DNA of 64,000 nt from Scyliorhinus canicula. Its lineage: Eukaryota. The stretch covers positions 5,952,001 to 6,016,000 of the forward strand of contig NC_052168.1 of assembly GCF_902713615.1 (NCBI RefSeq). The letters run 5' to 3'. The position numbers and the translations under genes are program-made. Shown piece by piece: positions 4,015 through 52,358 of the stretch; position 1 is the first letter of the stretch, and each line of letters starts with the position of its first letter. The notes below the pieces were generated by a model, which was given only the letters and a program-made list of their open reading frames with translations, did not search any database and was not told the DNA's origin.

Positions 4015-6431
<2,417 letters not shown>

Positions 6432-10480: not shown

Positions 10481-12723
<2,243 letters not shown>

Positions 12724-17950: not shown

Positions 17951-18269
17951 CTAGAACTTTCTAGGTGACAGTAGCAGCAGCAAAGATGGCCTCCCAAGTG
18001 CGTCAGAACTACCACAAGGACTGTGAGGATGCTGTTAACAAGCAGATCAACCTGGAGCTCTATTCCTCCTATGTTTACCTCTCCATGGTGAGTTTTCTTT
18101 ATTTTTGGGGGTCTTGGTTCAAAGTTTGGCCTGTGGCATCCATTGTATGCAAGTGGTTGGCATTCCCTTTGGGTGTCATTTGGGTCCTAAAGTATCTCTG
18201 TAGCCCAGTTTTAACATATATGTTTAAGAACACTTAACTTCATTCACCTCTGTTTGTTACCCATTCTGA

Positions 18270-18720
18270 TCATAGATCATGCCCTTTGGCCCTTGATGTC
18301 TGAAACCAAGGTCAAGCTCTCCCACTCCCTGTCATTCTGGTGTGCTCCATGTGCCTATCCAATAACTGCTTGAAAGTCCCTAAAGTGTCTGACTCCACTA
18401 TCACAGCAGGCAGTCCATTCCACACCCTAACCATTGAGTAAAGAACCTACCTTGGATATCCCTCCTATATCTCCCACCCTGAATCTTATAGTTATGCCCC
18501 CTTGTAACAGCTTCATCCACCTGGGGAAATAGTCTCTGAACACCCACTTAATCTATCCCCCTCATCATCTTTTAAACCTCTAAGTTGCCTCATCCTCCTC
18601 CGCTCCAAAGAGAAAAGCCCTAGCTCCCTCAACCTTTCCTCATCAGACCTATCCTGCAAACCAGGCAGCATCCTGGTAAATCTCCTTTTCCCCCTTTCCG
18701 ATTCTTCCACATCCTCCTTT
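18270..18720 (-). mobile_element. CR1/HER1-type LINE 3' fragment in ferritin copy 4 intron 1
   Basis: RRFTRMLPGL...EERLRELGLFSLERRR (CR1 ORF2 C-terminal motif). Confidence 0.85.
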
Positions 18721-19427
18721 TATAGTGGTCAGAAGACTGCTTAAAAATTGAAATTTGATTGAAACAATTCTTAATTGGGTATCTAATGAGTGAATTGGCT
18801 CTGGTGCTAAATTTGTTCTCCAGGGCCTGAAGTGACCATATTAAACTGAAAAGGTTTTGCTTTTATCCCACTTCTGATTCTAGACATCACAAAGGGAAGT
18901 TGAGTTGCCAATTTCCTTTCTATTTTCTACTGATAAAACCTCCTCCCTTGGGACTTCTAATCAGAAAAGATAAGGAAGCAGGTGGAATTGCAGCAAAGAC
19001 GCCTTGTAATCTTTCAATGATGGGGTCATTAGCGAATCCAAACATTTTGGTCATAATGAGACGTGGGTCTATTCTGACTCCTTTTCCATTCAGTCCTCCT
19101 ACTTTGACCGGGATGATGTTGCCCTGCGTCACTTTGCTGAGTTCTTCAAGGAGCAGTCACATGAGGAACGGGAACATGCTGAGAAACTGATGGAATTCCA
19201 GAATAAACGTGGAGGCCGCATCATCCTGGAGGATGTCAAGGTTAGATTTTAATGGACAAATTGGTGACTTTTGTTTTTTGGTGTCATGGAAGCTAGGAGG
19301 ATTAATATTTTGTGTACGTGGTTTTAATTGCCACTGGTTAGGTGAGCATTTATATTGCCCTTTAAAGGTGGTGGATGAGTTGCTACTTTAAACCCATGCC
19401 TATGTGGTGAATCCACAGTGCTGTTTA

Positions 19428-20115
19428 CATAGAACTTGCAGTGCAGAAGGAGGCCATTCAGCCCATCGAGTCTACACCGCCCCTTGGAAAGAGCACCCCA
19501 TTTAAGCCCCCACCCAACCTTTTTGACACTAGGGCAATTTATCATAACCAATCCACCTAACCTGCACATCTTTGGACTGTGGGAGGAAACCCATGCACGC
19601 ACACACGGAGAATGTGCAGACAGTGACCCAAGCCGGGAATCGAACCTGGGACCCTGGAGCTCTTGGAGGGATTTCCAGAATTTTGACCCAGTTATCTGTA
19701 CTTTGGGAAGCGTGCCTCTTTGCAACCCTCATCCTGACGGGTGAATGTGATACCACCCGGGCTGGATCTCAAACCGAGTTCAGAACATGGGTAATGTGAC
19801 TTGGATGGCTACAGTCTCAAATCACGTCAGGCCCATGTGGGTTTTTCCATGGGTGGCACTGTTGCTTCACAGCACCAGGGTCCCAGGTTGGGTCACTGTC
19901 TGTGCAGAGTTGGCACATTCTCCCCGTGTCTGTGTAGGTTTCCTCCGGGTGCTCCGGTTTCCTCCCACAAGTGCTGTTGGGTAATTTGGACATTCTGAAT
20001 TCTCCCTCTTGTGTATCCGAACAGGTGCCGGAGTGTGGGGACTAGGGGATTTTCACAGTAACTTCATTCATTGCAGTGTAAATGTAAGCCTACTTGTGAC
20101 AATAAATATTATTAT
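19428..20115. mobile_element. Two V-SINE fragments (19428-19660 -, 19850-20115 +) in ferritin copy 4 intron 2
   Basis: Family signatures. Confidence 0.75.
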
Positions 20116-20925
20116 TAAATTTGAGCTTCCTGCTCCTGGAGCAAATGGCCACATCCTCCGTGGCTCATGGGGATTGTTCAGACTTTCCTCTTAAGATTGA
20201 AACTGGAATCTCACCAGAAGTTGGTTAAACCTCCTGCAGGAAATGTGCATCAGGTGAGGCTGTTCCACATATGGCAGAGTGCTTCAGTTATTGGCTAATG
20301 ATGCACTTGAGGAGTGGGTTCTCCCTCTGGACATTGTGCTAGCTCAGGAAGTAAGTCTGTTCTCCAGTCCCAGATATCTCTTGCCCTGGAGGTGGAAGTA
20401 GATATCTAACGGGGTTGTTGTGGTGGTTTCTGAACCAGATGGAGTAGTGGTGGTGTGAATTGTTGGCTGTGCTGTTCCAAGTGGTACCTACCAGTCTGAA
20501 ATTCACTACTTTGTGACCTTGACTCCGCAGGTTTGCCAATAGGCCTGTCATCGTAGGGGCAGACATGTTTAACTTTAAATTGCCAGAACTCAGAATATTG
20601 AAAAACCTGAAGAAACTATGTAATTTTAATGAAAATAACTGCCCTGAGTGAGAACCATTTCCTCATCTGGTGGATGATCTGTATCCTCTGCAGTTGTAAT
20701 GGACCATTTTTAATTTTAAAATCCATCCACTTTTTAGATTTATTGTTTTCCTCCCTCCCTTTCCAGAAACCAGAGCAGGTCTGGAGGCAATGCAGAGAGC
20801 TCTGCAGATGGAGAAGAATGTGAACCAGAGTCTGCTGGATCTGCACAAACTCTCCTCTGGGAACACTGACCCTCATGTAAGTTCTTTATTTCTGGGGGTA
20901 TATTGGAGGTTCTCCAATTCTAATG

Positions 20926-21197
20926 TGTGGTGGTATGAATGGGAGCACTGACATTGGTGCAGAGCATTGGTTTCCCATTTTGCTCTGGCTGGTCATGTGC
21001 CTCATCTGATTGGCTGGGACTAGTCATGTGACTGCTCACCAATTGGTTTAGAGGCAAGTAGACCCCGCCTCTGAGGCGGGGTAAGTACAGAGTTCCTGGC
21101 GGTCGGCCTTTCTCTGTAGTCGACCACCTGGCTCAAAACTAGCTGATTAAAGCCTTTGGACCTTCATCGTGCCTCGCATCCAATTGATGGTACATCA
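20926..21197 (+). mobile_element. Solo LTR (Gypsy-type) in ferritin copy 4 intron 3
   Basis: TGTGG...CATCA ends, perfect 5-bp TSD TAATG (20921-20925 / 21198-21202), CCAAT boxes, ATTAAA. Confidence 0.8.
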
Positions 21198-21283
21198 TAA
21201 TGGCTTTGCTTTTGCTGGTGGGAGGAGTTGGGTGAAATGGGTCTTGCCCCAATTTTCTGGGATGTAATAACATTAATGTCTAA

Positions 21284-21508
<225 letters not shown>

Positions 21509-21725
21509 TGACTGAAGTTAATCCAGGACAATTCTGTAATCTTGGTGATCTGTACCTTGGCTTTATGTCCTAATCTGAACTGTACAAAATAAAGTCTGTT
21601 CATTACAGCTCTCGTGTCAAACATTCCTAACTACACACTTAACCAGCAAAGCTGAGTTTTCCGGAATGAAAAAGGCTGCTTTATACATCGGGGCTTAACA
21701 GGATGGCTTGAAGCCCAGAACTTCT

Positions 21726-22036
21726 GGTAGCATTGTGGATAGCACAATTGCTTCACAGCTCCAGGGTCCCAGGTTCGATTCCGGCTTGGGTCACTGTCTG
21801 TGCGGAGTCTGCACGTTCTCCCTGTGTCTGCGTGGGTTTCCTCCGGGTGCTCCAGTTTCCTCCCACAGCCCAAAGATGTGCAGGTTAGGTGGATTGGCCA
21901 TGATAAATTGTCCTTAGTGTTGGGTGGGGTTATGGGGATAGGGTGGAGGTGTTGACCTTGGGTAGGGTGCTCTTTCCAGGAGCTGGTGCAGACTCAATGG
22001 GCCGAATGGCCTCCTTCTGCACTGTAAATGCTATGA
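21726..22036 (+). mobile_element. HE1-like V-SINE
   Basis: Family signature. Confidence 0.85.
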
Positions 22037-23870
22037 AACTAGGGAACATGGTTCAAACAATGAAGTCTTCTGTAGGATACTCGAGTCTACTGCCATTCAA
22101 CTAGGTACTACCTTTCCCAAGCTATACTGAGCCATTAGTACCTGGAACATGTATGTGGGAAGTAAACAGGTTTATGATTTAGTGAGGATTATGGGAGCTG
22201 AGTTAGGTGAGGTGATGGCAGAGCAAGAATTTGGTTATTCTGACCCCAATTCTCTGGTGTCTGTGATTTAGATGATGAAACTTGCAGATCGTAGCACCAA
22301 CCAGCAGAAACTTGAGTGTTTCTGAGAATGGTTTAGGTACCATTGTTTAAGGCGCAGACTAAGTGGCTATCATGCCGCTAGACTTTAATTATATTGTTAG
22401 GATTCACCGGTGAAGATGATTTGTGTCACAATGGGAAATTGTGATTCAGTGCGATCTACCCATAACTTCAACAAACCTATTGAACTAAGAGAACCTGGTT
22501 TATTTATTCCTTTTAAAAAGCAGCAGTGGCCAAAGATGGCTGCCACTAGTCACCTGCTGTCTGATTATTTTTTTAAGTTGATTACTTTCTGGGACGTTTC
22601 TATAGGGGTTGCACTGCAGACCTGCCTTGACATGTTGCGTGGAGTTTCACATCTTCGGGGGTATCAAGGTCCACTTCAATAAAGGGGTTCTTGAAATGTA
22701 AGACGTTAAAAATGCAAAAGTGCTGAATTTTAATAAATAGTGGAGGCAATGGGAGCTGCTAAGCAGACAGGGTCCACGCAAAGTACAAAGTGTGGCAGGG
22801 GGGAAGTGGGTGCCAGCAGACTAGGCTAGTGGTTGTGAAAATAATGGAAGGGCAGAATTTAAGGCAATCTAGCTGAATGCACACTTTGGGTAGCTGAATA
22901 GGAAGGGAGGTGGGGTAGCACTGTTTAAAGTGAGATTTATACATTCGTGAGAAAGGACTGCCGATAACGATGTAGAAATAGTTTGGGTGGGGCTAAGAAA
23001 CAGAAAGCATTGGTTGGAGTTTATAGGTCACCAAGCAGTAATGATGTGGGTCACAGTATAATTCGAGGTGCATGTAACAAGCATAATCATGGGGGACTTG
23101 GAATGGGTAAACCTAATTAGTCCTGATGCTGTGGAGGGTGAATTCCTGGAATGTATACAAGATGGTTTTCTAGTACAGTATGTTGAGGAACTTCATTGCA
23201 GTGTTAATGTAAGCCTACTTGTGACACTAATTGCATGCACCATTCTAAATCGGATGGATTCCGAAACGTATGGGACCAATATCTCAAATTTATAGGCTGT
23301 GATGTTTGACTTGCTCCTACAAGGTTTTACATTAGTTATGTAGCACTGTCTTGAACTTGCTATACATGAAGGTGTGCATCATATTACTATGTCCACATGG
23401 CCTTATGCTGTTCTCAAGCTTATGTTTTTTTTTCTCTATTGTGTGGTTGGCAGCACTAAGTTTAAGAATCAGTTGTATTGCTGTTCTCCTGTCTTTTTCT
23501 CTGCTCGTGTAGTCAGAAGCATTTATGTTGTACTGTACCCGTGTTGCATTACTTGTAAAAAGAAACTAAAAAAACATGTTTTGTTAAAATGACTGACTAT
23601 GAGTGGAACGACTAGCATTTATATTGCAAAGTTCTCCACAAGCCAGTTTTAGTCATAGCTGCATTGTAGAAAATGCAGCAACCTCTTGATTGAGGGATAA
23701 ATAATAATAATATAATAATCTTTATTAGTATCTGAAGTTACTGTGGAAATCCCCTCGTTGCCTGTTCGGGTACACAGAGGGAGAATTCAGAATATCCAAT
23801 TCACCTAACAAGCACGTCTTCCGGGACTTGTGGGAGGTAACCGGAGCGCCCGGAAGAAACACACGGAGAC

Positions 23871-24560: not shown

Positions 24561-25119
24561 GACTCCGCACAGACAGTGATCCAAGCCGGGTCCCTGGCGC
24601 TGTGAAGCGACAGTGCTAACCACTGTGCCGCCATGCTGCCCTGCTTTTTATTCAGTCTGAGAGAGCAGATGAGACCTCAGTTTAACACCTCCTTTGAAAG
24701 AGTGCTCCACTGACAGCGCAGGACTCTCAGTACCGCACGGGGAGTATCGGCCTGAACATTTGTGGAGCCTCCGGAGGAGGGCTTGAACCCACGACACACT
24801 GACACTGAAGGAAAAGCTCCAGGTTAGCTGTAACTCGCAAACTAATAACTTATTTGCCTTTTAGCCTGGCCCTGAGATGGTTAAATAGGGACGCATGCCT
24901 AAACCAGTCCCATTGGACAAACCTGCCCCAAGTTAAAGCCTGTCGCGTTATCTCTCCTGCCCCACGGGTGACCTCCGCCCTTGCTGCCGTCATTTGACAA
25001 ACAAATTATCTTCCACCCTTCAACTTCAGGGGAGGAGGGGGGGTGGGGGAGTGAGAGAGCGAGAGAGAGAGAGAAACGCAGAGAGAGTGAGGGAGCCAGC
25101 TATTCGGAGGATCCTCACC

Positions 25120-28100
25120 ATGTCAGCTAATAAAGATCAGGAGAGCGTCCACGCAGCCGAGATGGACAAGGCCCCAGCTGCACCCTCCGAGGCTCCCTGC
25201 GCGGAACTCAAAACGGCCATGGAGAAATGGTGAGCTCATCAAGGGGCTTTAAGAAACATTCCTGTCCAATTGCAATTTTACGGGAGGCTTGCGAAGCGTC
25301 ATGGTAAAACGTATGGTTTTTCTTTACATAACTGAGTGCGGGGTTAAATGACAGAATCGCTTTGCAGTTAACGCGTCTGCCCAGTTCCAGCCGTGCAAAT
25401 GGCTTTGCCTGATTGACCTGACACCTCGCATAGCATCAACTCCAAATTAACCATTTCCGGGAGTCGGTGTGGAATTCCGATCAGGGTTATTGAGCCGTTA
25501 TTGTCCTTTCATTCACGCCACCTTACGCAAGAGGAGGGAGTCTCTTCAGCAAACTGGTAAATACCCATAACCTAGCACATTTGTAGCAACATAGGAAGCA
25601 CCCAGCGTTGGCAGTGAAACATCGCCACCCTCTCAAGTTTCTCCCGGATTCTAGGTTTTCTGCTGTCTTGAGCACCCCCTCCCCCCCAATTTTAAACGCC
25701 CCACCATTTGGCAGCCATGTTTTCAGTTGCCTGGGCCCCAACCTCCCTAATCCTCAACGCCTCTCCCTTCTCCTTTAAGATGCTACTTCGAGACACCCCC
25801 CCCCCCAACACCTCCTTATGTGGCCTGTCAAATTTCATTTGATAATGCTCCAATGAACCACGTTTTACTATGTCGGAGGTGCTATTTAAATGCAAGTTAC
25901 TGTTGTTGTGTTGGATGAGGAACTGAGAAAGTCCTCAATGCAGAATGGTTTGTCTCGGTTCAGCTCGACCCACATTTTTTACTTTGATAAATTTATTCGA
26001 TTGAAGGTTGAAGTCGAATTTGCTGAAGTAAGTTATCTTTTTAGATTCAACTACAAGCCGTTTGAACAGGCCCCGATGCAGAAGGGCATCCATTTTAGGT
26101 TAATGCAGAATCACGAGACCTAGCATTGAACTAGGAGGGGAGAAAAATCAGAAATGAATGATTCTGGTTTGGAAGGGTGGCACTACTGCCTCACAACCCC
26201 AGGGACCCTGTTTCAATTCCGGCCTCGGTTGACTGTGTGGAGTTTGCACTTTCTCCCCATGTGTGTGTGTGGGTTTCCTCCGGGTGCTCCGGTTTCCTCC
26301 CACAGTCCAAAGATGTGCAGTTTAGCTGGATTGGCCATGTTATATTGCCCCTTTGGTGTCCAAAAGGTTAGGTAGGGTTAGGGGGATAGGGTGGAGGAGT
26401 GGGCTTAAGTAGGGTGCTCTTTCCAAGGACCGGTGCCTACTCGATGGGCTGAATGGCCTCCTTCTGCACTGTAGGGATTCTGTGATTCTACGATGAAAGA
26501 GGGATGAACAAAATGATCCTGTAGAGAGGCACTGATGATATTTAAGTGAATTGAAGAAGTCAAACCCTGTTACAATGGGCAGGAGGAGGGTATATGTTAG
26601 TAACCAGCGAAATATAGGACTGGTTATGGAGGCATCAACTTGGTTAAACTTGAGGGCAGCACGGTGGCACAGTGGTTAGCATTGCAGCCTACGGCACCGA
26701 GGTCCCAGGTTCGAATCCCGGCCCTGGGTCACTGTCCGTGTGGAGTTTGCACATTCTCCCCGTGTCTGCGTGGGTTTCACCCCCACAACCCAAAGGATAT
26801 GCAGGGTAGGTGAATTGGCGACGCTAAATTGCCCCTTAATTGGAAAAAAAATAATTGGGTACTCTAAATTGAAAAAAAACTTGGTTAAACTTTTGAGCGA
26901 TATTCCAATGGTTAAGATAGAACATTAGCCACTGATTTAAACGGGGAGTGGGATGCGGCAGGATTGAGGTGCGCCTGTGTTTCTATGGAAGTACCAGTGA
27001 GATGGAACGAATTGACTCCTTGTCTAGACATACCTCGGGTGGTAAAGAACCAGTTTCCTTTGACATATTTCTATGTATCCTTTAATGTGTCCATAGGTTA
27101 TATGGCCTCTGGGAAGGGTAGGCCATGAGATACCTGCTTTGTCAGCAAACCCCCTCATGAATCCCTTTGATGGAGATAGGAAAGCACTTGGTGGTGGAAA
27201 TGTTCTTTAACGGGCATTTAATTGTTTCCATTAAGTTAGGACGTGGAGCGTTTGGTCAATAGCAGATAGGTGTCTCGAGGGGGACTGGCGTTTATATATC
27301 CCCTTTCACATCCTCAGAATGTTCCAACATGCTCAATAGCCAATTACCTCTGAAGTCCAGCCCCTAATGTTCTGTACAGGAATGTGGCAGCCAAAGTGCA
27401 CACAGCAAGATCCCGCACACAGCAAAACCTGTTAAATATGTCTTTGATGGCGTTGGTTGAGGAAGGAATGTTGATCTGGGCACCTCACCTGTTCTGCAGA
27501 TCGCTCAACGTCATCTTTTTCATACAGAGGACAGACAGGAATGTCAGTTTAATATTTCACCTGGAAGGCAATATCTCCCTCAATGCCATGTTCTCTCATT
27601 TAAAAAAAAATATTTGTTCACAGGATGTGGGCGTCTCTGGTTAGGTCAGCATTTATTGCCCATCCCAATTGCCCTCGAAGGCAGTGGTAATGAGCCGCCT
27701 TCTTAAACTGCTGCAATCCATGTGGTGTAGGTACACCCACAGTGCTGTTAGGGAGGGAGTTCCAGGATTTTGACCCAGCGACAGTGAATGAACGGCCGAT
27801 ATATTTCCAAGTCAGGATGGTGAGCGACTTGCAAGTGATGGGGTTCCCAGGTATCTGCTGTTCTTTTCCATCTAGATGGTAGAGGTCGTGGGTTTGGAAG
27901 GTGCTGTCGAAGGAGCCTTGGCGAGTTCCTGCAATGCATCTTGTAAATGGTACACACGGCTGCCACTGTTCGTCGGTGGTGGATGGAATTAATGTTTAAG
28001 GTGGTGGATGGGGTACCAATCAAGCGGGGCTATTTTGTCCTGGATGGTGTTGAGCTTCTTGAGTGTTGTTGGAGCTGCACTCATCCAGGCAAGTGGAGAG

Positions 28101-31100
28101 TATTCCATCACACTCCTGACTTGTGCCTTGTAGATGGTGGACAGGATTCGGAAAGCCAGGAGGCGAGTTAATCGCTCCTCTTGGTAATGTAATCCCAACT
28201 CTCAAATGAGTTCAATTTATTTTAATGGCCTTCCTGGCGAGTGGAGCCTCCCACAGTTGAATAGTCTAGGGACACTGGGCATTGTGAAGTAGTTGATATT
28301 TTATCATAGATATTTATCATAGTATTTAAAGTGCCGAAGGAGGCCACTCGGCCCATCAAGTCTGCACTGGCTCTTGGAAAGAGCACCCTACCCAAGCCCA
28401 CACCTCCACCCTATCCCCATAACCCAGTAACCCCACCCAACACTGAGGGCAATTTTGGACACTAAGGGCAATTTATCATGGTCAATCCACCTAACCCGCA
28501 CATCTTTGGACTGTGGGAGGAAACCGGAGCTCCCGGAGGAAACCCACGCACACACGGGGAGGATGTGCAGACTCCACACAGACAGTGACCCAAGCCGGGA
28601 ATCGAACCTGGGACCCTGGAGCTGTGAAGCAATTGTGCTATCCACAATGCTACCGTGCTGCCCTGGAAAGCGTGAATATCCTGTTTCTCCAACACAAAAT
28701 GAGTGTTTGTACCTTTTGACCTTGTATATATATATTTTTAAAAAAAATAAATTTAGAGTACCCAATTATTTTTTCTAATTAAGGGGCAATTTAGCATGGC
28801 CAATCCACCTACTCTGCACATTTTTGAGTTGTGGGGGCGAAACCCACGCAGACACGGGGAGAATGTGCAAACTCCACACGGACAGTGACCCAGAGCCGGG
28901 ATCGAACCTGGGACCTCAGCGCCGTGACGCAGCTGTGCTAACCGCTAGGCCACCGTGCTGCCCTTGTATATATTTTTTTATTACTGTTTTAATAAAAAGA
29001 TATGGCCAATCCAAAAAAAAAAATGCTCCATTCGGTAGTAACACCCTCAGACAAAACAATCGTCCCTCCGCCGGTTTTGTTGCGTGCTCGGCCTCTCTCT
29101 GCCCCGTGTTATTTTAACCTCAAGCTCTGCTCCCTAATTTGAGCTGACGGTGACTTTGCCTGCTTATCTGGCGTGGCCACACTCAGGGCAGGGATTGAGG
29201 GCTGTGCCACGGTGATGGGTAATTTGAACTGTCGAGCTGCGAGCTGACTCAGCTCCTGTCAACTGATGAGACCAGGGGAAGTATTTCTGGCTGGCTGCTG
29301 CCGTCTCTGCCTTGTATTTGTCTAATGAAGTCTGACTGATCATTAGTGCTGGGTTCCTGGTCACCCTGATCAATGTATGGAACATTTTTGTACAAATTCT
29401 CTGTGAGTATGCAATCGGAAAATGCTGCTTCCCCCTCGCACGCCAGTGTTTAACAGGCTTAGAACAAGCCTGACCTTGAATTTTAGTATGAATGTTGTGG
29501 TTAGCAAGTTAAGGAACATGAACGCTGGGGAATCGTATGCTCTCTGTTGGGGCTGCCCAGTTCAACACGGTTTATGCGAGGTGCTCCTTCCCACTGCTGA
29601 CCAGCCAAAGATGTCACATGTTTTAGCCGTGCACACTAATTTTAGGAGAAAATGCCTCACATGCATTCGCACAATGTGGGGGGCATGTACTGCATATGTA
29701 CATATCCACTTAAACATCTGTCACATTCAAACAAGGCAGTAAAACACTCGCCACCATCAAAAAAACAATCACAGGCACACTCTGTTTTTGTCTTATCACC
29801 ATCAAATAACAAATAACTGGACAACGTAGAAACGGTTGGAGGCCATTCAGCCCCTTACTTCAGTGCTTCAAATCCATTACTCCCACACTCGGCAGATAGC
29901 CCTTTCATACCCTTAGTAAAAAAAATCTCTTTTTAACATTTCAGACAAAGAAGATGGAAGCAGGTGGAGGCCATTCGGCCCTTCGAGTCTGCTCCACCAT
30001 TCGTGGCTGATCATCAAATTCAATACCCTGATCCCGCCTCGCCCCCACCAGCCCCTGATCCCTTTAGCCCCGAGAGCTAATCCCATCGGGAAATCACTCA
30101 ACGCTTTGGCCTCGACTACTTCCTATTGTGGCGCAGTGGTTAGCACTGGGACTGCGGCGCCGAGGTCCCAGGTTCGATCCCGGCTCTGGCTCACTGTCCG
30201 TGTGGAGTTTGCACATTCTGCCCGTGTTTGCGTGGGTTTCGCCCTCACAACCCAAAAGATTTGCAGAGTGGGTGGATTGGCCAGGCTAAATTGCCCCTTA
30301 ATTCGAAAAAAAAAAATTGGGTACTCTAAATATATTTTTTTTAAATGACTTCTTATTGACACCCACACTTCTGGTGACAGGGATGTGCTGAGCATTTGCA
30401 CATCAGGTGGCTCTCCTCCATAATACAGTAGAATAGGCACTTTTGGATGAATTTAGCCTGAAAATCCGGACTTATTGTACCCTTAAAGAGAAAAGGAAGA
30501 GAAAAAGAGCAATATGCCAACTAGTGGTGGCTCAGGAGGCCACAGCGAAGCCAGAAGCGATGGACAAGAGGGCAGGAGCAGCGAGCGAGCGAGTCGGCAG
30601 GCCCACGAGCTAAGGGGTCCCCGGCCACCCCCGAGAGAGGGAGACCGACGGCCCGGACAACGGGCCCCCCACCCCCCCCCCCCACCCCTTCAGACCCGGA
30701 GAGGGGTGGAAGACACAACAGCCCCAGAATCCACTCCTTTTTTCTGGAGGGGGAAAGAGTTCCAGATTTCTATGACCGTGTTTTATGAAAAGGATGCTGC
30801 CAGGTATCGCTCCTGAATGGCCTGGATATCACTTTCAGGTATTGTACCTGGATGCCCTCCTTGAGCAGATCTCAACCACATCTGGATTCCCCAAACCGCC
30901 CATATGCTGCTTGCGGTTATTGCTTGGGACGAGCGAACCATCCCCCCAACAGTTGTGCTTCAGCTCTGACCCTCGGGGCCTGCTACAGGACTCCGAATTT
31001 AGCTTTTAACAATCGTCCTGATTGCAAATGCCACTTTGGGTCATTTGTAGGCCTTCATGTCCAGAACCAGAAAGTTTCAGCAGGGCACCATCACCGCTGA

Positions 31101-34100
31101 ACCTGTCCACAGGCCCCAGGTCGCCCACCTCCACCCGAGTATTGCACTGTCAATAATTCAGGAAATTATGCTCCCCTTAGATTGGCTGATTTCCGTCTCA
31201 CCTTTAATCCCCTCAGCTCCATTAACTTTCAACCCAACTCTTTTTGTACATCCTGCTTCCCCCATGGACAGTGGAGACATAAGAACATAAGAACTAGGAG
31301 CAGGAGTAGGCCATCTGGCCCCTCGAGCCTGCTCCGCCATTCAATGAGATTGTGGCTGATCTTTTGTGGACTCAGCTCCACTTTCCGGCCCGAACACCAT
31401 AACCCTTAATCCCTTTATTCTTCAAAAAACCATCTATCTTTACCTTAAAAACATTTAATGAAGGAGCCTCAACTGCTTCACTGGGCAAGGAATTCCATAG
31501 ATTCACAACCCTTTGGGTGAAGAGGTTCCTCCTAAACTCAGTCCTAAATCTACTTCCCCTTATTTTGAGGCTATGCTCCCTCGTTCTGCTTTCACCCGCC
31601 AGTGGAAACAATCTGCCCGCATCTATCCTATCTATCCCTTCATAATTTTAAATGTTTCTATAAGATCCCCCCCTCATCCTTCTAAATTCCAACGAGTACA
31701 GTCCCAGTCTACTCAACCTCCTCGTAATCCAACCCCTTCAGCTCTGGGATTAGCCTAGTGAATCTCCTCTGCACACCCTCCAGTGCCAGTACGTCCTTTC
31801 TCAGGTAAGGAGACCAAAACTGCACACAATACTCCTGATGTGGCCTCACTAACACCTTATCCAATTGCAGCATAACCTCCCTAGTCTTAAACTCCATCCC
31901 TCTAGCAATGAAGGACAAAATTCCATTCGCCTTCTTAATCACCTGTTGCACCTGTAAACCAACTTTCTGTGACTCATGCACTAGCACACCCAGGCCTCTC
32001 TGCACAGCAGCATGCTTTAATATTTTATCGTTTAAATAATAATCCCGTTTGCTGTTATTCCTACCAAAATGGATAACCTCACATTTGTCAACATTGTATT
32101 CCATCTGCCAGACCCTAGCCCATTCACTTAACCTATCCAAATCCCTCTACAAACTTCCAGTATCCTCTGTACTTTTCGCTTTACCACTCATCTTAGTGTC
32201 ATCTGCCAACTTAGACACATTGCCCTTGGTCCCCAACTCTAAATCATCTATGTAAATTGTGAACAATTGTGGGCCCAACACGGATCCCTGAGGGACACCA
32301 CTAGCTACTGATTGCAAACCAGAGACATACCCATTATTCCCCACTCTTTGCTTTCTATTAATTAACCAATCCTCTATCCATGCTACTACTTTATCCTTAA
32401 TGCCATGCATCTTTATCTTATGCAGCAACCTTTTGTGTGGCACCTTGTCAAAGGCTTTCTGGAAATCCAGATATACATCCATTGGCTCCCCTTTATCTAC
32501 CACACTGGTAATGTCCTCAAAAAATTCCACTAAATTAGTTCGGCACGACCTGCCCTTTATGAACCCATGCTGCATCTACCCAATGGGACAATTTCTTTCC
32601 AGATGCCTCGCTATTTCTTCCTTGATGATAGATTCCAGCATCTTCCCTACTACTGAAGTTAAGCTCACTGGCCTATAATTTCCTGCTCTCTGCCTACCTC
32701 CTTTTTAAACAGTTTGCTCATTTCCAATCCACCGGGACCAACCCAGAGTCTAGTGAATTTTGGTAAATCATCACTAGTGCATCTGCAATTTCCCTAGCCA
32801 TCTCTTTTAGCACTCTGGGGTGCATTCCATCAGGGCCAGGAGACTTGTCTACCTTTAGCCCCATTAGCTTGCCCATCACTACCTCCTTAGTGATAACAAT
32901 CCTCTCAAGGTCCTCGCCTGTCCATAGCCTCATTTCTATCAGTCACTGGCATGTTATTTGTGTCTTCCACTGTGAAGACCGACCAAAAAACCTGTTCAGT
33001 TCCTCAGCCATTTCCTCATCTCCCATTATTAAAACTCCCTTCTCATCCTCTAAAGGGCCATATTACCTTAGCCACTCTTTTTGTTTTATATATTTGTAAA
33101 AACGTTTACTGTCTGATTTTTATATTCTGAGCAAGTTTTCTCTCATACTCTATCTTACTCTTCTTTATAGCATTTTTAGTAGCTTCTGTTGCCCCCTAAA
33201 GATTTCCCAGTCCTCTGGTCTCCCACCATCTTTGCCATTTTTATGCTTTTTCCTTCAATTTGATACTCTCCCTTATTTCCTTAGATATCCATGGTCGATT
33301 TTCCCTCTTTCTACCGTCCTTCCTTTTTATTGGTATTAACCTTTGCTGAGCACTGTGAAAAATCACTTGGAAGGTCCTCCACTGTTCCTCAACTGTTCCA
33401 CCATAAAGTCTTTGCTCCCAGTACATTAGGAAAATGTTTAGTCTCAGAGAATGGTTACAGCACAGAAGTCTATTCTCCCCACCGTGTGCATTACAGCCCT
33501 CTCTGCAAGAGGGTGAACACCTAACCCTAGTCCCTGTCAACATTCTAGGGGGTTGACATTGATCAGAAGGTGAACTGGACTAGTCATATAAATACTGTGG
33601 CTACCAGAGCAGGTCAAAGACTAGGAATCCTGCGGTGAGTAACTCACCTCCTTACCTCCCTCCCCCCCCCCCCCCCCCAAAGCCTGTCCACCACCTACAA
33701 GACACAAGTCAGGAGTGTGATGGAATACTCTCCACTTGCCTGGGTGAGCGCAGCTCCAACAACACTCAAGAAGCTCGACACCATCCAGGACAAAGCAGCC
33801 CAGTGATCGGTACCCAATCCGCCCCCTTCAACTTTCGCTCCCTCCGTCCGTTTCCCCCGCAGCCCGACAATTGTTCCCTCTTCAGATAATTAAAATTCTC
33901 TTTTAAAGGTCTCAATTGAACCTGCCTCCACCAGACTCTCAGGCCGTGCATTCCAGATCCTAGCCACTCGCTGCGTGAGAAAGCGTCTCCTGGTAGCCAC
34001 AGTTGCTGCTTTGCCAATCACCTTATATCGGTTTTCTTGGCTGTCAGGGTAGGGATCGGGATTGGCATGGAGCTTGGGCCTCGGAATCTCCGTCTAACTT

Positions 34101-34216
34101 TGGTGTTTTTTTTTATTTTAATGGTTTCCAGCATCACAGATAAAGGTGAAGAAAACTGCAAAGAAGCAACTCAGGCCTACAAAAACTGCATGAAAACATT
34201 AGGATTTAAAGTTTAA
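25120..34216 (+). CDS. COX17-like twin-CX9C (CHCH) small protein, 64 aa, lacking the Cu(I)-binding CC motif; coding exons 25120-25229 and 34132-34216
   Basis: Kozak CACCATG; donor TG|GTGAGC; acceptor with CTAAC branch, poly-T and CAG|C; spliced product [64 protein letters not shown] aligns to the COX17 C-terminus [28 protein letters not shown]. Confidence 0.88.
26174..26880 (+). mobile_element. Two V-SINEs (26174-26490 HE1-like; 26654-26878 short A-tail variant)
   Basis: Family signatures; located in intron 1 of the COX17-like gene. Confidence 0.8.
27620..28175 (-). mobile_element. CR1/L2-group LINE 3' fragment
   Basis: [37 protein letters not shown]; related pieces at 33540-33840, 34900-35410, 62950-63150. 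Confidence 0.75.
28305..28963 (-). mobile_element. Two adjacent V-SINEs (28305-28663, 28735-28963)
   Basis: Family signatures. Confidence 0.82.
31277..33420 (-). mobile_element. CR1/HER1-type LINE, ~2.1 kb of ORF2 (RT) with frameshifts and 3' tail
   Basis: [49 protein letters not shown] motifs; (CATAAGAA)n tail. Confidence 0.92.
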
Positions 34217-34321
34217 CAACAGCTGACTGGTGAGCGTCTATTCTACGATTAGTTTGGTGTCCGTGTTTGGGTAGTAACTATCCGTTGGGCCTAACCTGCT
34301 TCACCTGGGTATGTCCTGAAA

Positions 34322-34608
34322 TAATAATAATAATCTCTATTGTCGCAAGCAGGCTGACATTAACACTGCAATGAGGTTACTGTGACAAGCCCCTAGTCGC
34401 CACATTCCTGATCGGGTACACAAGAGTGAGAATTCAGAAATGTCCAAGCAGGTCTTTCGGGACTTGTGGGAGGAAACCGGAGGAAACCCACGCAGACACA
34501 GGGGGAGAACGTGCAGACTCCACACAGACAGTGACCCAAGCCGGGAATCGAACCTGGGACCTTGGCGCTGTGAAGCACCCGTGCTAACCACTGTGCTGCC
34601 GTGCCGCT
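34322..34608 (-). mobile_element. V-SINE (tail type 2)
   Basis: Family signature. Confidence 0.8.
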
Positions 34609-34830
34609 GCACCCTCAGCCAGTCAAAAGGTGGGAACAGTCAAGGAGGTAGACTTTCTCACATCCCCAACTGTGGTTGCATAATCCTGGGGAACTGATGC
34701 AGATGCTGTGCCGTCTATGCGCTGTCCCGTTACCTAACTCTAGTTGCACATATTCCTGGAGGTTTTATTGTGTGGCCTCCCACTTCTAACTGTTTCCACC
34801 CAGAACACCGGCAATTCCAACCCTCAGCCT

Positions 34831-34865
<35 letters not shown>

Positions 34866-35412
34866 AGAATGATTTTATAAAAAATGAATGATAGTGTTGA
34901 AGTTGGATATCAACATACTGGAGGTCACCATTGACCAGAGGCTTAACTGGACCAGCCATGTAAACACTGTGGCTACAAGAGCACATCAGTGGCTGGGGGT
35001 CCTGTGGCAAGAAACTGACATCCCGACTCCCCAAAGCCTGTCCGCCAACTGGCACAAAACAGGATTCTGATGGAATACTCTCCCCTTGCCTGGATGAGTG
35101 CAGCTCCAACACACAGAAAGCTTGACTATCCAGGACAAACAGCCCGCTTGATTGGCACCCCATCCGCCACCTTCAACATTCGCCCCCTTCACCATTGACA
35201 CACAGTACCAGCCGTCTGTACCATCGACAAGTGGCACTGCGGCAACTCACCAAAGCTCCTTCAACAGCACCTTCCAAACCCAAGACCTCTAGCACCTTGG
35301 GTGGCAGCTACGTAGGAACACCACCACCTGGAGGTTCCCGTCCAAGCCACTCGGCTCCCCGACTTGAAAATATATCACCGTTGTCGCTGAATCAAAATCC
35401 TGGAACTCTACA

Positions 35413-36285
35413 ACATGGCGGCACAGTGCTTGGCACTGCTGCCTCACAGTGTCAGGGACCTGCGTTCAATTCCGGCCTCGGGTGACTGTGTGGAGTCTGC
35501 AAATTCTCCTCATGTCTGCGTGGGTTTCCTCCGGGTGCTCCGGTTTCCTCCCAGAGGCCAAAGATGTGCAGGTTCAGATAAAGTGCCCCTTAGTGTTCAG
35601 GGATGGGCAGGTTCAGTTACATAGAACATAGAAAAATAAAGCACAGAACAGGCCCTTCGGCCCACAATGTTGTGCCGAACCTTTGTCCTAGATTAATCAT
35701 AGATTATCATAGAATTTACAGTGCAGAAGGCCACTCGGCCCATCGAGTCTGCACCGGTACTTGGAAAGAGCACCCTACCCGAGGTCAACACCTCCACCCT
35801 ATCCCCATAACCCAGTAACCCACCCAACACTAAGGGCAGTTTTGGACACTAAGGGCAATTTAGCATGGCCAATCCACCCTAACCTGCACATCTTTGGACT
35901 GCGGGAGGAAACCTGAGCACCCGGAGGAAACCCATGCACACACGGGGAGGATGTGCAGACTCCGCACAGACAGTGACCCAAGCCGGGAATCGAACCTGGG
36001 ACCCTGGAGCTGTGAAGCAATTGTGCTATCCACAATGCTACCGTGCTGCCCTTAAGAACAAATTAATCTACACCCCATCATTCTACCGTAATCCATGTAC
36101 CTATCCAACAGCCGCTTGAAGGTCCCTAATGTTTCCGACTCAACTACATCCACAGGCAGTGGATTCCATGCCCCCACTACTCCCGTTACAGGGTTACGGA
36201 CCTAGGGAGGGTGGTCTTTCTGAGGGTCGGTGCAGACTCGACGGGCCGAATGGCCTGCTGGTTCACTATAGGAATCCTATGATTC
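35413..36285. mobile_element. Nested cluster: + strand SINE split by a CR1 tail fragment that is itself split by a - strand HE1-like SINE (35700-36051)
   Basis: SINE head 35413-35615 resumes at ~36180; CR1 tail pieces flank the inner SINE. Confidence 0.7.
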
Positions 36286-36639
36286 CAACAGCACAGTGGG
36301 TGTACCTGCACCACATGGACTGCAGCGGTTCAAGAAGGTGGCTCACCACCACCTTCTCAGGGGCAATAAGGGATGGGCAATCAATGCTGGCCCAACGAGT
36401 GATGCCCACATCTCCCAAAAAAAAACTCAACCTTTTTTAAGCCGCTACCATTTGTCTCTTGCATTGCTGTGTCAACCAGGTTAATCCTCAATCCCGCGAG
36501 AGTCCTGGACAGTCCTAAAGGGCCGGCAATCCTAATGTTTAATTTTCCACGGCATGGCAGAATATCACCACTCTGATCATTAGGACAAGCCACTGACTGG
36601 TGGGGCCATGTAACCACCTATTTCTTATGTTGCGATCAC

Positions 36640-36675
<36 letters not shown>

Positions 36676-36839
36676 CCCACAATATATTTATCAATGGGGC
36701 AAACAATCCCTTCACAATGCCTGGAAACTTCAAGAAGAAATACTTTCTGTAGAATTATCCTCCATCTCTCTCCTCCGTTGGGTCAGGAAACTTGAGGAAA
36801 GCTTGGCTGATACAAGCAATCACTCGCCCTCGCATCAGT

Positions 36840-37640
36840 TCAAGGTTGTTAAGAAAGCTTATGGAATGCTCTCCTTCACTGGCAGAGGTATAGAATATAA
36901 AAGTAAGGATATAATGTTGGAATTGTATAAAACACTGGTGACGCCACAGCTGGAGTATTGTGGGCAGTTCTGGTCGCCACATCACAGGAAGGATGTAACT
37001 GCTCTGGACAGAGAGCAGAGGAGATTTACAAGAACGTTGCCAGGGCGGGAAAGATGTAGCTACAAGGAGATTGGAGAGGCCGGGGTTATTTTTCTTGGAG
37101 TAAATAAGTCTGACGGGTGACATATTAAAATTAATTTAAAGTGCCCAATTCTTTTTTTTTCCTAATTAAGGGGCAATTTAGCATGGCCAATCCACCTACC
37201 CTGCACATCTTTGGTTTGTGAGGGTGAGACCCACGCAGACACGGGGAGAATGTGCAAACTCCACACGGACAATGACCCGGGGCCAGGATTGAACCTCGGT
37301 CCTCAGTGCCGTGAGGTAGCAGGGATAACCACTGCGCCACCATGCCACCCAGGAGGCGTACAAAATTATGAGGCAAAAGAGATCGGGTGGACAGGATACA
37401 ATTGTTTCCCTTGCTGGAGAATCCGAGAACCAGAGGACATAGATTCAGGATAAGAGGCAGAAGGTGTAGAGGGAACATGAGGAAGAACCTTTTTACGCAG
37501 AGGGGAGTGGGAGTCTGGAATTCGCTGCCCGAGTTGGTGGTGGAGGCAGAGACCCTAAACTCTTCTAAATAGTACCTGGATCTGCACCTTAAGTGTTGTA
37601 AGCTACACTGCTACGGATCGGGCGCAGGAAGGATGGATTA
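36840..37640 (+). mobile_element. CR1 fragment interrupted by a V-SINE (37125-37350, -)
   Basis: LYKTLVTPQLEYCGQFWSPH...; RTRGHRFRIRG...NLFTQR. Confidence 0.82.
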
Positions 37641-37870
37641 GAAAAGGGTACCTGGGTGTCTTTGGGCTGGAGTTGTAATACATCTGTGGTTCCATCTTTA
37701 GTCTTCAAACATTCTCACTGTCTTATTAACATTTTTCGTTGCTCCATCTTCTGAGGTCATGTACCGCGGTGGGTCGCATCGCTACCTCTGAGCCAGGAGC
37801 ACTGGGTTTGCGTCCCACTCCAGCACCTTGATAGCCATAGAAGATGCATTCGCAATCCGGCAAACAAGTT

Positions 37871-38057
37871 AGGGGCTGGTTTAGCTCACTGAGCTAAATC
37901 GCTGGCTTTTAAAGCAGACCAAGCAGGCCAGCAGCACGGTTCGATTCCCTGTACCAGCCTCCCCGGACAGGCGCCGGAATGTGGCGACTAGGGGCTTTTC
38001 ACAGTAACTTCATTGAAGCCTACTCGTGACAATAAGCGATTTTCATTTTCATTTTCA
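37871..38057 (+). mobile_element. Short SINE (head type B, tail type 2)
   Basis: Same family as 5365-5534, 39249-39429 and 62685-62875. Confidence 0.82.
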
Positions 38058-38348
38058 AGTTGGGTGTCAACTGCAAACCCTTCCAACATACGGTAAGAGT
38101 GGGAGAGATTCCTGGTCAATCAATGATGGGAGAGAAAGTTAGAACCTCTGCCATCGCTATCCATAGCTCCGGGCTACAACGTGCACTTAAAAGTGCATGT
38201 TCCCGTAGCAACGTGGCCTTTCTGGGTGAACCACAACAGACCACCACCAGAGCGAGATAGCTAGTATCGGATCCCACTCATCAACCCTTTTAATGTGAAA
38301 TAGGATATGCACTGCTCAATTAACACACTTGTTTGTTTCCTCCTACAG

Positions 38349-38460
38349 GTATCTGCATCTCTGGGCTGCCCATTTCATGACCGGCCCTTCTTCCAAGCAT
38401 CTCCGTTTCCCCATGACCTCCCACTCACTAATAAACCTCCTCCACGGTGAATAATCCACC
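38349..38460 (+). other. Putative non-coding terminal exon (3'UTR) of the COX17-like gene
   Basis: Exon 2 has donor CTG|GTGAGC at 34229/34230, 13 nt after the stop; strong acceptor TTGTTTGTTTCCTCCTACAG|G at 38348/38349; AATAAA 38430-38435 followed by a GU/U-rich tract. Confidence 0.65.
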
Positions 38461-39874: not shown

Positions 39875-40222
39875 ACCCCCCCCCCCACCACCCATTCCCC
39901 CCCCCCCCCCAATCCCCCCCCCCCACCCCCTCCCATTCCCCCCCCATCCCCCCCACCCTCCCATTCCCCCCACCCTCCCATTCCCCCCCCATCCCCCCCA
40001 CCCTCCCATTCCCCCCCCATCCCCCCCCCCCACCCATTCCCCCCCCTCCCCCAACCACCCATTCCCCCCCCCTATCCCCCCCACCCTCCCATTCCCCCCC
40101 ATCCCCCCATTCCCCCCCATCCCCCCCCCCACCCCCCATTCCCCCCCCACTCCCACCCCCCCCAACCCCCATTCCCACCCCCCCCCCATTGCCCCCCCCA
40201 CGTCCCCCCCCCCCCCCCCCCC
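39875..40222. repeat. C-rich low-complexity repeat (CCCTCCCATTCCCCCCC-like)
   Basis: Directly visible. Confidence 0.9.
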
Positions 40223-41203
40223 ATGTCATTTGGTGTCCAGTCTCCACCCTGTCAAGAAGCTTGGGCAGTTTTTGGACAGTAAAGCCATTCAATAAATCCA
40301 GGTTTGCATACCTCCCTTTACGGGTCGCGCTCTGAGTGGCGTAATGAAAATCTATGAAAAGCTTCCTAGCCCCAATACCAACTCAAGGGTCACTGTTCAT
40401 TAACATAGGAAATGAGAGCAAGGCCATTTGGCCCCTCGAACCTGCTCCATCATTCAACTGCATCATGGCCGATCTTCTACCGCAACACCATTTTCCATGC
40501 ACTATCCTTTGTTATCTTTAATACCTAGAACCTGCAATCTCAGTCTTGAACATGCTCTGCAGCCCTCTGGGGTCAAGAATTCCAAATATTCACATCAGGC
40601 TTAAATAGTCAACTCCTTTTTGAGACTAGACTATGTCCCTTGGTTCTATGGCCACGCCCCCTCCCCCAAAGCCAGCAGAATCATCCTATCCACATCTACC
40701 CTGTCGAACACTGTAAGAATTTTCGCTGGTTCAATGGGATCAGCTCATGTTTCTAAACTAGAGAACACAGACCCAATCTCTCCTCATCCCCAGGAATTGG
40801 CACAGGTGAACCTTCGTCGCACTGTGGCAAATATATCCTTCCTTAAGGGAGACCAAAACTGCCCACAATACTTCAGGTGTGGTCTGGTGATAAGATTTGT
40901 TCATTATTAAAGAGACAGCAGACTAGAATCTTCACATTTGATTTGAGATTTCCATTGCTCAGCCAGAGCTACGATGCAGCACATTAAGATGTGTGTTTGT
41001 TTGTCGTGGGCCATAACAGACAAACTGCCCTGAACTCCACGACACACCCATTCCTGGCGAAAGATCCTGCTCATGTCAACATTGGCGAGATTGAGGTATT
41101 TGAGCATTCCAGGCCAACATGTCGCCACGTGATGCAACTGGTTTCTAATGCTAGACCGTGCCCTGCATGGGCAGGCTGCATCAGGTCAATTCCCCAACCC
41201 AAA

Positions 41204-41559
41204 GGGGCAGCACGGTAGCATTGTGGATAGCACAATCGCTTCACAGCTCCAGGGTCCCAGGTTCGATTCCGGCTTGGGTCACTGTCTGTGCGTAGTCTGC
41301 ACATCCTCCCCGTGCGTGCGTGGGTTTCCTCCGGGTGCTCCGGTTTCCTCCCACAGTCCAAAGATGTGCAGGTTAGGTGGATGGGCCATGATAAATTGCC
41401 CTTAGTGTCCAAAATTGCCCTTAGTGTTGGGTGGGGTTACTGGGTTATGGGGATAGGGTGGAGGTGTTAACCTTGGGTAGGGTGCTCTTTCCAAGAGCTG
41501 GTGCAGACTCGATGGGCCGAATGGCCTCCTTCTGCACTGTAAATTCTATAAATTCTATG
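41204..41559 (+). mobile_element. Full-length HE1-like V-SINE
   Basis: Complete head, V-domain, CR1 tail and (AAATTCTAT)2 end. Confidence 0.88.
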
Positions 41560-42641: not shown

Positions 42642-43065
42642 CCTTGGTAACGGAAGGCCCACCCCGCCCTTGGCAACGGAAGCCCCACCCCGCCCTTGGC
42701 AACGGAAGGCCCACCCCGCCCTTGGCAACGGAAGGCCCCACCCCGCCCTTGGTAACGGAAGGCCCACCCCGCCCTTGGTAACGGAAGCCCCACCCCGCCC
42801 TTGGCAACGGAAGGCCCACCCCGCCCTTGGCAACGGAAGCCCCACCCTGCCCTTGGTAACGGAAGCCCCACCCCGCCCTTGGTAACGGAAGCCCCACCCC
42901 GCCCTTGGTAACGGAAGCCCCACCCCGCCCTTGGTAACGGAAGCCCCACCCCGCCCTTGGTAACGGAAGCCCCACCCCGCCCTTGGTAACGGAAGCCCCA
43001 CCCCGCCCTTGGTAACGGAAGCCCCACCCCGCCCTTGGTAACGGAAGCCCCACCCCGCCCTTGGA
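42642..43065 (+). repeat. 26-bp minisatellite, ~16 copies (CCTTGG[T/C]AACGGAAG[C/G]CCCACCCCGC)
   Basis: Directly visible tandem array embedded in a CR1 relic. Confidence 0.95.
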
Positions 43066-43259: not shown

Positions 43260-44362
43260 CCCCCCTCCCTCCCTCCCTCTGCCCCCCCTCGCTCTACCCA
43301 CCCCCTCTCTCTCTATCCCCCTCTCGCTCTCTCTCTCTATACCCCCCTCTCGCTCTCTCTCTCTATACCCACCTCTCGTTCTCTCTCTTCACCCCCCTCA
43401 TGTTCTCTCTCTTCACCCCCCTCTCGTTCTCTCTCTTCACCCCCCCCCTCTCGTTCTCTCTCTTCACCCCCCCCTCTCGTTCTCTCTCTTCACCCCCCCT
43501 CGTTTCTCCTCTCTTCACCCCCCTCTTCGTTCTCTTTCACCCCCCCCTTCGTTCGCTCTCTTTCACCCCCCCCCTCCTCGTTCTCGTCTCTTCACCCCCC
43601 CTCTCCGTTCTCTCGCTTCACCCCCCCCCTCTCGTTCTCTCGCTTCAACCCCCCCTCCTCGTTCTCTCTCTTCATCAACCCCCCCCCCCTCTCGTTCTCT
43701 ATCTTCTTCACTCACCCCACCTCTCGTTCTCTCTCTTCCACCCCCCTCGATCGTTCTCTCCTCGTCTCTCTTCACCCTCCCCCCCCCCTCGCGGTTCTCC
43801 TCCTCTTCACCCACCCCCTACTCGTTCTCGTCTCTTCACCCCCCACCTCTCGTTCTCTCTCGTCACCCCCCCCTCATCGTTCTCTCTCTTCACCCCCCCC
43901 TCTCGTTCTCTCCTCTTCACCCCCCCTCTCGTTCTCTCTCTTCACCCCCCCTCTCGGTTCCTCATCTCTTCACCCCCCCCTCTCGTTCTCATCGCTTCCC
44001 CACCCCCTCTCGTTCTCTCTCTTCCCCCCCCCCCTCGTTCTCTCTCTTCCCCCCCCCTCTCGTTCTCTCTCTTCCCCCCCCCTCTCGTTCTCTCTCTTCA
44101 CCCCCCCTCTCGTTCTCTCTCTTCACCCCCCCTCTCGTTCTCTCTCTTCACCCCCCCTCTCGTTCTCTCTCTTCACCCCCCTCTCGTTCTCTCTCTTCAC
44201 CCCCCCTCTCGTTCTCTCTCTTCACCCCCCCTCTCGTTCTCTCTCTTCACCCCCCTCTCGTTCTCTCTCTTCACCCCCCACTCACTCTCTCTCTTCACCC
44301 CCCTCTCGCTCTCTCTTCACCCCTCTCTCTCTCTCCACCCCCCCCCCCCCCCCCCCCCCCTC
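43260..44362. repeat. ~1.1-kb polypyrimidine minisatellite, ~24-bp unit CTCTCGTTCTCTCTCTTCACCCCCC
   Basis: Directly visible. Confidence 0.95.

Positions 44363-52327: not shown

Positions 52328-52358
<31 letters not shown>

Follow-up and report, generated by a model that had tools for sequence, protein, structure and literature searches.

We identified a homolog of COX17 at positions 25120-38460 of a 64,000-nt stretch of the genome of the catshark Scyliorhinus canicula (LR744052.1:5,952,001-6,016,000), hereafter the window, which contains no N and in whose coordinates all positions are given. COX17 is the chaperone that supplies SCO1 and COX11 with Cu(I) in the intermembrane space, and is regarded as a single-copy, nearly invariant animal gene. 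The catshark locus is a genuine COX17 homolog, and on balance we favor its being a genuine, unannotated protein-coding paralog, an ancient duplicate made at the DNA level that would encode a CHCH protein of the intermembrane space without a copper site. The product would probably be a small mitochondrial protein with a job other than that of COX17.

The gene model consists of two short coding exons on either side of a long intron, a proposed further intron and exon in the 3' untranslated region (UTR), and a putative upstream region:

24860-25119, forward strand: putative promoter and 5'UTR, weakly indicated by an inverted CCAAT (ATTGG, 24912-24916) and a G-rich/GA-repeat tract (25030-25092)
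25120-25229, forward strand: coding exon 1, 110 nt, from Met1 into the Cys37 codon, of which it holds the first two bases
25230-34131, forward strand: intron 1, a phase-2 GT..AG intron of 8,902 nt that divides the Cys37 codon as TG/C (here and below, the slash marks the splice junction)
34132-34229, forward strand: exon 2, 85 nt of coding sequence followed by 13 nt of 3'UTR and ending at a GTGAGC donor
34230-38348, forward strand: proposed intron 2, inside the 3'UTR, from donor and acceptor consensus only
38349-38460, forward strand: proposed exon 3, all 3'UTR, inferred from signals, with AATAAA at 38430-38435 and a downstream T/GT-rich tract

Exon 1 begins with an ATG in the context cACCATGt, encodes an acidic Ala/Pro-rich tail followed by the first CX9C helix (C27-C37), and ends in ...GAGAAATG/GTGAGC. 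Exon 2 is preceded by a T-rich tract (...TTTCCAG/CATCACA) and carries the stop codon (TAA, 34214-34216), while intron 1 between them is filled with interspersed repeats. Re-translation of the two exons joined through the split cysteine codon agrees with the initial annotation, which had proposed exactly this 64-residue peptide with a perfect twin CX9C: the joined open reading frame (ORF) has the pairs C27-x9-C37 and C46-x9-C56, with eight residues after the last cysteine, and its predicted product has a mass of 6.9 kDa, an isoelectric point (pI) of 5.3, and a net charge of -2.4. As read from the sequence, the putative 5'UTR (24860-25119) holds no in-frame upstream ATG; the GC content (0.52) and the observed/expected CpG ratio (0.65-0.73) of the putative promoter region are slightly above those of its flanks. 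Beyond the stop codon, the splice signals (donor CTGACTG/GTGAGC at 34229/34230 and a strong acceptor, ...CCTCCTACAG/G, at 38348/38349) make a 3'UTR exon at 38349-38460 plausible.

In Pfam, the joined peptide scores 38.7 bits for COX17 (PF05051; cut-off 24.9), with an alignment that takes in positions 9-47 of the 47-position profile and leaves its Cys-Cys part unmatched; weak Pfam matches to CHCH and Cmc1 are also seen. Exon 2 by itself reaches 31.6 bits, above the same cut-off, and over its full length it can be aligned with human COX17 (PDB 2RN9; E 2.3e-5). Exon 1 by itself gives no match, and adds about 7 bits to the joined score. It is the sole site in the 12.5 kb upstream that has an in-frame Cys codon, nine sense codons, and TG/GT, and, when a GTRAG donor is required, the sole such site on both strands of the whole window. 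Because the Pfam COX17 match lies above the cut-off, the 2RN9 match is independent of exon 1, and exon 1 is the unique compatible partner, the match of this ORF is not due to chance. A six-frame pattern scan of the window revealed no other COX17-like exon and no exon with a CC-x-C motif resembling COX17.

We compared the catshark copy with 114 canonical COX17 sequences having a clean twin CX9C, all of which share its cysteine spacing (C-x9-C-x8-C-x9-C-x8-end). All 114 carry the Cys-Cys pair two residues before the first CX9C cysteine, and they are likewise invariant (114/114) at A, P, E, T, R, and D of helix 1, at L, I, A, and H of helix 2, and at the R that follows the last cysteine. In the catshark copy the Cys-Cys pair aligns with E24-A25, and ten further positions that are invariant in canonical COX17 are also altered. 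The changes are as follows:

Copper site and next residue: C-C-A in canonical COX17, E-A-P in the catshark copy
Helix 1: P, T, R, D in canonical COX17, A, L, M, E in the catshark copy
Helix 2: L, I, H in canonical COX17, A, T, Y in the catshark copy
Residue after the last cysteine (C-M-R): R in canonical COX17, K in the catshark copy
Lead-in to the copper site: basic KKPLKP in canonical COX17, acidic Ala/Pro tail in the catshark copy
pI: 7.6 in canonical COX17, 5.3 in the catshark copy

The helix-1 Arg-Asp pair is thus replaced by Met34-Glu35, and the net charge of canonical COX17 is +0.5, as opposed to the negative value of the catshark copy, in which the N-terminal 26 residues alone account for -3.4. 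What the catshark copy keeps are the four cysteines, the I-x-x-KGEENC loop, and the C-terminal CM-x-x-LGFK, and 20 of the 38 residues in the CHCH region are identical to canonical elasmobranch COX17. Three claims made from the sequence at the outset are thereby borne out: that the copper-binding pair has been lost, that the basic KKPLKP segment has given way to an acidic Ala/Pro stretch, and that the C-terminal half is COX17-like.

The organization of the gene is shared with canonical COX17, which we retrieved by searching with a non-vertebrate COX17 query; this identified 188 COX17 proteins (the best 120 of the 188 are listed), many of them from sharks and rays, and eight further chondrichthyan species are present as members of the same COX17 clusters. 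In the three canonical loci compared, those of Mustelus asterias, Carcharodon carcharias, and Amblyraja radiata, exon 1 has 116-119 nt of coding sequence and exon 2 has 85 nt, and intron 1 is of phase 2 and interrupts the second Cys codon (TG/T), with lengths of 8,806, 6,891, and 4,424 nt, respectively. The stop codon of canonical elasmobranch COX17 is also followed, at a distance of about 25 nt, by a conserved donor (GTG/GTGAGTAT); in the catshark copy the distance from stop codon to donor is 13 nt. The non-vertebrate COX17 (P0005) has a 72-nt intron at the same position and in the same phase (...GCCTG/GTACGA...GGGCAG/CATC). Among the COX17 "proteins" of the metagenome and Logan collections there are several in which the gene caller has translated a short phase-2 intron (RDA-W-Y...S-IIEKGEE); these are mis-predictions, yet they reveal the intron position.

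This three-part layout (110 + 85 nt of coding sequence, the TG/C split, and the post-stop donor) therefore marks the catshark locus as a DNA-level duplicate of COX17 rather than a retrocopy or a chance ORF; a retrocopy origin is ruled out by the shared introns, exon lengths, and intron phase. Together with the Pfam match above the cut-off, the three-exon layout and intron phase found in canonical elasmobranch COX17 substantiate the homology that had been proposed.

We next consider the age of the duplication and the selection acting on the copy, using the 38 codons that can be aligned. Differences from Mustelus COX17 at codon positions 1, 2, and 3 number 9, 9, and 23, respectively (Fisher p = 1.7e-4). 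The proportions of differing silent sites (pS) and replacement sites (pN), and the third-position differences, are as follows:

Catshark copy against canonical elasmobranch COX17: pS 0.85-0.95 (beyond saturation), pN 0.24, third-position differences 22-24/38
Canonical COX17, shark against shark and shark against skate: pS 0.15-0.34, pN <=0.02, third-position differences 3-7/38
Canonical shark and skate COX17 against non-vertebrate COX17: third-position differences 22-25/38

Across the shark-skate split itself, canonical orthologs differ at 6-7 of the 38 third positions. Given silent-site saturation on one side and these ortholog values on the other, the split of the catshark copy from canonical COX17 is therefore far older than the divergence of sharks and skates; judged by its silent sites, the duplication is older than the elasmobranch crown. 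The copy is unlike elasmobranch COX17 orthologs both in its silent divergence and in its neighbors. Because the canonical COX17 protein hardly changes, nearly all of the replacements fall on the branch of the catshark copy, where they are several-fold fewer than its silent changes. In a protein tree of 42 sites this branch measures 2.4 substitutions per site, compared with <=0.19 for any canonical branch, with a bootstrap of 22 for its placement. In simulations of neutral drift that started from the canonical sequence, 0.27% of runs preserved the open frame and the four cysteines when the divergence was set to the overall observed value; with p = 0.65, a value close to that of the third positions, not one of 200,000 runs did. 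The only simple reading of these codon patterns is that purifying selection has acted on the twin-CX9C region over most of the history of the gene. That the locus is under selection rather than a pseudogene had been suggested from its intact frame, splice sites, and cysteines; the excess of third-position over first- and second-position changes and the rarity with which neutral simulation keeps the frame and four cysteines lend weight to this suggestion.

A small protein with a twin CX9C and no presequence bears the signature of the MIA40/CHCHD4 substrates, which in the intermembrane space become helical hairpins stapled by disulfides. We propose that an ancient DNA-level duplication of COX17 gave rise to a paralog whose whole copper-handling N-terminal module was replaced; its predicted product would enter the intermembrane space through the MIA40/CHCHD4 disulfide relay and fold into a helical hairpin with two disulfides. 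Lacking the Cys-Cys pair, it should be unable to bind Cu(I) at the canonical site, and hence to donate copper to SCO1 or COX11. We read the product as copper-independent because the Cys-Cys pair, the basic lead-in, and the Arg-Asp pair are all gone. Its most likely role would be that of a small copper-independent CHCH adaptor or assembly factor, acting through the surface that it still has in common with COX17, namely the I-x-x-KGEENC loop and the C-terminal CM-x-x-LGFK.

Several observations weigh against a functional paralog of this kind. The first concerns import. Human COX17 docks on MIA40 via its third cysteine (C45), guided by L48 and I49, and the L48A/I49A substitutions abolish docking (PMC2806287); docking is stronger when the residue at position 7 is aromatic or hydrophobic (Sideris et al. 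2009, PMC2806287). After C46, the catshark sequence reads A49, T50, and Y53 where human COX17 has L48, I49, and H52, and with A49 and T50 at the docking positions MIA40-dependent import would not be assured. The tyrosine at position +7 is as in yeast, and helix 1 of the catshark copy has gained L30 and M34, giving the pattern x-Hy-x-x-Hy-Hy-x-x-C before C37 and a candidate signal L30..A33-M34..C37. Import by MIA40 may be weak, or else helix 1 may have taken over from helix 2 as the site of the recognition signal.

A second set of such observations concerns the data themselves. The test of selection covers 38 codons and assumes a canonical-like ancestor, and the reading of the catshark copy as an expressed gene, drawn from its genomic sequence, is provisional. 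In the annotated locus that we compared (LR744052.1:5,959,986-5,983,511, letter for letter the same as window positions 7986-31511), two ferritin genes are called and none over exon 1. An exhaustive HMMER search of 15 billion predicted proteins, including many shark and ray RefSeq sets, with the 31-residue ORF of exon 2 returned no ortholog, this search being sensitive only to relatives about 75% or more identical; its single relevant match is a canonical COX17, the non-vertebrate P0005, whose gene call runs through the 72-nt intron, and the other five are short stretches of proteins of 738-1309 residues, four of them matching at several sites. The gene is thus hidden in the sense first proposed, with no protein-coding gene called over exon 1 and no like protein among the 15 billion. 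A word-indexed protein search with the 64-residue peptide returned no candidate, a weak negative since it also missed canonical shark COX17 sharing three to four five-residue words; canonical ray COX17, for example, shares KGEEN, GEENC, EENCK, and LGFKV with the peptide and was not returned. Neither of the genomic exon-1 and exon-2 ORFs is present in the protein collection on exact look-up, and the exon-2 ORF matches generic CHCH clusters only, with scores <0.85, in the ESM Atlas. The ferritin clusters of S. canicula and S. torazame in the collection are sourced from NCBI, UniRef, or nr and none from Logan, and the collection apparently holds no Scyliorhinus transcript assemblies. Because of this and of the limit of about 75% identity, the negatives from the collection weigh little.

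Relatives were also looked for through the neighboring ferritin genes. Four ferritin loci of S. torazame and one of Callorhinchus contain no COX17-like exon, which also counts against the paralog, these loci not being the orthologous interval. The ferritin array of S. torazame is rearranged and extends past the 10-kb flanks, and the Callorhinchus ferritins have as their neighbor a matrix metalloproteinase (MMP) gene instead of CHMP2A; the size and rearrangement of the array kept the orthologous interval out of reach from the ferritins. A literature search for a vertebrate COX17 paralog or COX17-like protein found nothing relevant.

A rival reading is that of a non-functional relic, an old COX17 duplicate whose expression or translation has ceased, perhaps recently, and whose frame is intact by luck. 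In its favor, the copy is unannotated in a RefSeq-annotated genome and has no matching protein or ORF in large collections, its branch is very long (2.4 against <=0.19 substitutions per site), and the canonical MIA40 docking residues are lost. We nevertheless consider a relic unlikely: silent sites are saturated and replacement sites are not, which argues that the copy has been constrained for the greater part of its existence; nothing is broken in the ATG, the two splice pairs, the stop codon, the poly(A) signal, the four cysteines, or the KGEENC and LGFK motifs; and the neutral simulation gives P <=0.003. A very recent loss of function would still be compatible with these data.

If the copy is indeed a functional paralog, its role might differ from that of an adaptor or assembly factor. 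It could be a copper-blind competitor, the decoy or regulator suggested in the initial annotation, by occupying MIA40, SCO1, COX11, or MIC60 without delivering copper and so tuning the metallation of complex IV, as would fit an I-x-x-KGEENC loop and a CM-x-x-LGFK that are nearly unchanged while the copper module has been replaced. We find little to recommend this role, as the invariant basic segment and the helix-1 Arg-Asp are gone and the tail is acidic; should docking depend on those residues, competition for SCO1 and COX11 would be doubtful.

It is very unlikely that the copy is a recent, lineage-specific duplicate of catshark COX17 that is diverging fast, even though no ortholog was found in any other species searched and the gene sits in a fast-changing region of tandem ferritins. 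Its third-position differences (22-24/38) are as large as those between shark and non-vertebrate COX17, compared with 6-7/38 for shark-skate orthologs, and no similarity of intron or flanks to the canonical loci was seen, though no search was aimed at such similarity. We further infer, from the presence of canonical COX17 in 17 other chondrichthyans, that a canonical COX17 lies elsewhere in the S. canicula genome. It is not among the best 120 of the 188 matches, nor among the cluster members of eight chondrichthyan COX17 proteins, but such absence means little as evidence that the present locus is the only COX17 gene of the catshark, with the Cys-Cys pair supplied by an alternative first exon; this is scarcely credible, the 64-kb window having no CC-x-C COX17-like exon, and exon 2 being silent-saturated and altered at invariant residues where elasmobranch orthologs are near-identical, so that the locus is not the ortholog.

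The ancient paralog that we favor lies between a ferritin array and CHMP2A:

17986-21511, forward strand: ferritin copy 4, the upstream neighbor, with a Pfam Ferritin match; the exons of S. canicula "ferritin heavy chain-like" (P0223) match at 100% over the same gene range
47138-60124, reverse strand: CHMP2A, the downstream neighbor, oriented toward the COX17-like gene (convergent), two of its exons matching Pfam Snf7

The first coding exon of CHMP2A matches human CHMP2A (7ZCG) with E 3.6e-23, and its C-terminal exon can also be read. Ferritin copy 4 is the last of a tandem array upstream, with copies at about 1-710, 4000-6428, 10466-12720, and 17986-21511. At the canonical COX17 of Amblyraja radiata (CM021379.1), the neighbor is instead an HCN-type channel gene (Ion_trans_N, cNMP_binding) about 8.6 kb away, so that the chromosomal neighbors of the two genes differ; nor is this skate neighbor part of what we take to be the neighborhood of human COX17. 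In human, COX17 and GSK3B presumably lie at 3q13.33 and CHMP2B at 3p11, with CHMP2A, FTL, and GSK3A on 19q13. A literature search on 3q/19q paralogy found nothing relevant.

This setting allows a more specific and tentative account of the paralog, in which a copy of COX17 from an early vertebrate duplication was kept beside CHMP2A in cartilaginous fishes and was lost, or has gone unrecognized, in bony vertebrates. It might then represent an undescribed, copper-free family of twin-CX9C intermembrane-space proteins, whose MIA40 signal would have moved from helix 2 to helix 1. The silent-site saturation is consistent with a two-round (2R) ohnolog origin and provides no date for it; the human arrangement, with COX17, GSK3B, and CHMP2B on chromosome 3 and CHMP2A, FTL, and GSK3A on 19q13, would fit such an origin too. 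We regard this account as possible but rather less than probable.

Other features of the window and of the ferritins are as follows. Positions 1-21600 carry, on the forward strand, at least four ferritin genes of H/M type in tandem, and exon 3 of ferritin copy 4 (20700-20948) is without the usual 10-residue start, for which the RefSeq model has a 15-residue stretch instead; copy 4 may be aberrant or mis-modeled. In S. torazame, the homologous array has a rearranged copy order and a length of 0.9 Mb or more (31.86-32.79 Mb of CM105050.1), and Pristiophorus japonicus has dozens of distinct ferritin entries, some in clusters with >100 members; sharks show a great expansion of ferritin. An abundant interspersed repeat of about 330 bp is found all through the window on both strands (e.g., 21726-22041, 28317-28668, 35697-36051, and 41205-41559) and in the S. 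torazame loci (88-97% identity), and it yields spurious "CX9C" pattern matches. A C-rich array lies at 39880-40224, and minisatellites occur both between the COX17-like gene and CHMP2A (26-mer x 16 at 42642-43064, with 96% matches, and 25-mer x 39 at 43317-44331) and upstream of the first coding exon of CHMP2A (a G-rich 23-mer x 38 at 60847-61730 and a 26-mer array at 61810-62104).

If our reading is true, an ancient, selected copy without a copper site would be a natural separation-of-function allele, revealing which surfaces of COX17 are important for something other than the delivery of copper, and the few CHCH proteins of the intermembrane space would gain a further member. It would also provide a concrete case of a conserved 64-residue small ORF overlooked by standard vertebrate annotation.

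The closest known relative is canonical elasmobranch COX17 (e.g., Mustelus asterias XP_078089104.1), which the catshark copy resembles in its twin-CX9C spacing, KGEENC loop, CM-x-x-LGFK[IV] C terminus, and length of about 64-67 residues, as well as in its three exons, phase-2 intron, 85-nt exon-2 coding sequence, and 3'UTR intron (proposed in the catshark). It differs in its Glu-Ala site, acidic tail, pI, neighbors, and a branch more than 10 times longer. For its role, the working analogy is with CMC1, COA4, COA5, CHCHD7/COX23, and CMC4, which are likewise small CHCH proteins with no presequence and no metal-binding Cys pair; the catshark copy is distinguished from them by its descent, in sequence and gene structure, from COX17. 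The COX17 copies of Arabidopsis are presumably canonical. That a genome can hold more than one COX17 is indicated by Arabidopsis COX17-1 and COX17-2 and by the expansion of COX17 copies in icefish, and these reports are not known to describe a copy without the Cys-Cys pair (PMC6696091, PMC3595028). A precedent for a non-chaperone role of a COX17-derived protein is COX17L of Tetrahymena thermophila, a COX17-like structural subunit of complex IV (PMC10227065), which is ciliate-specific, belongs to an unrelated lineage, and is likened to the catshark copy by description only.

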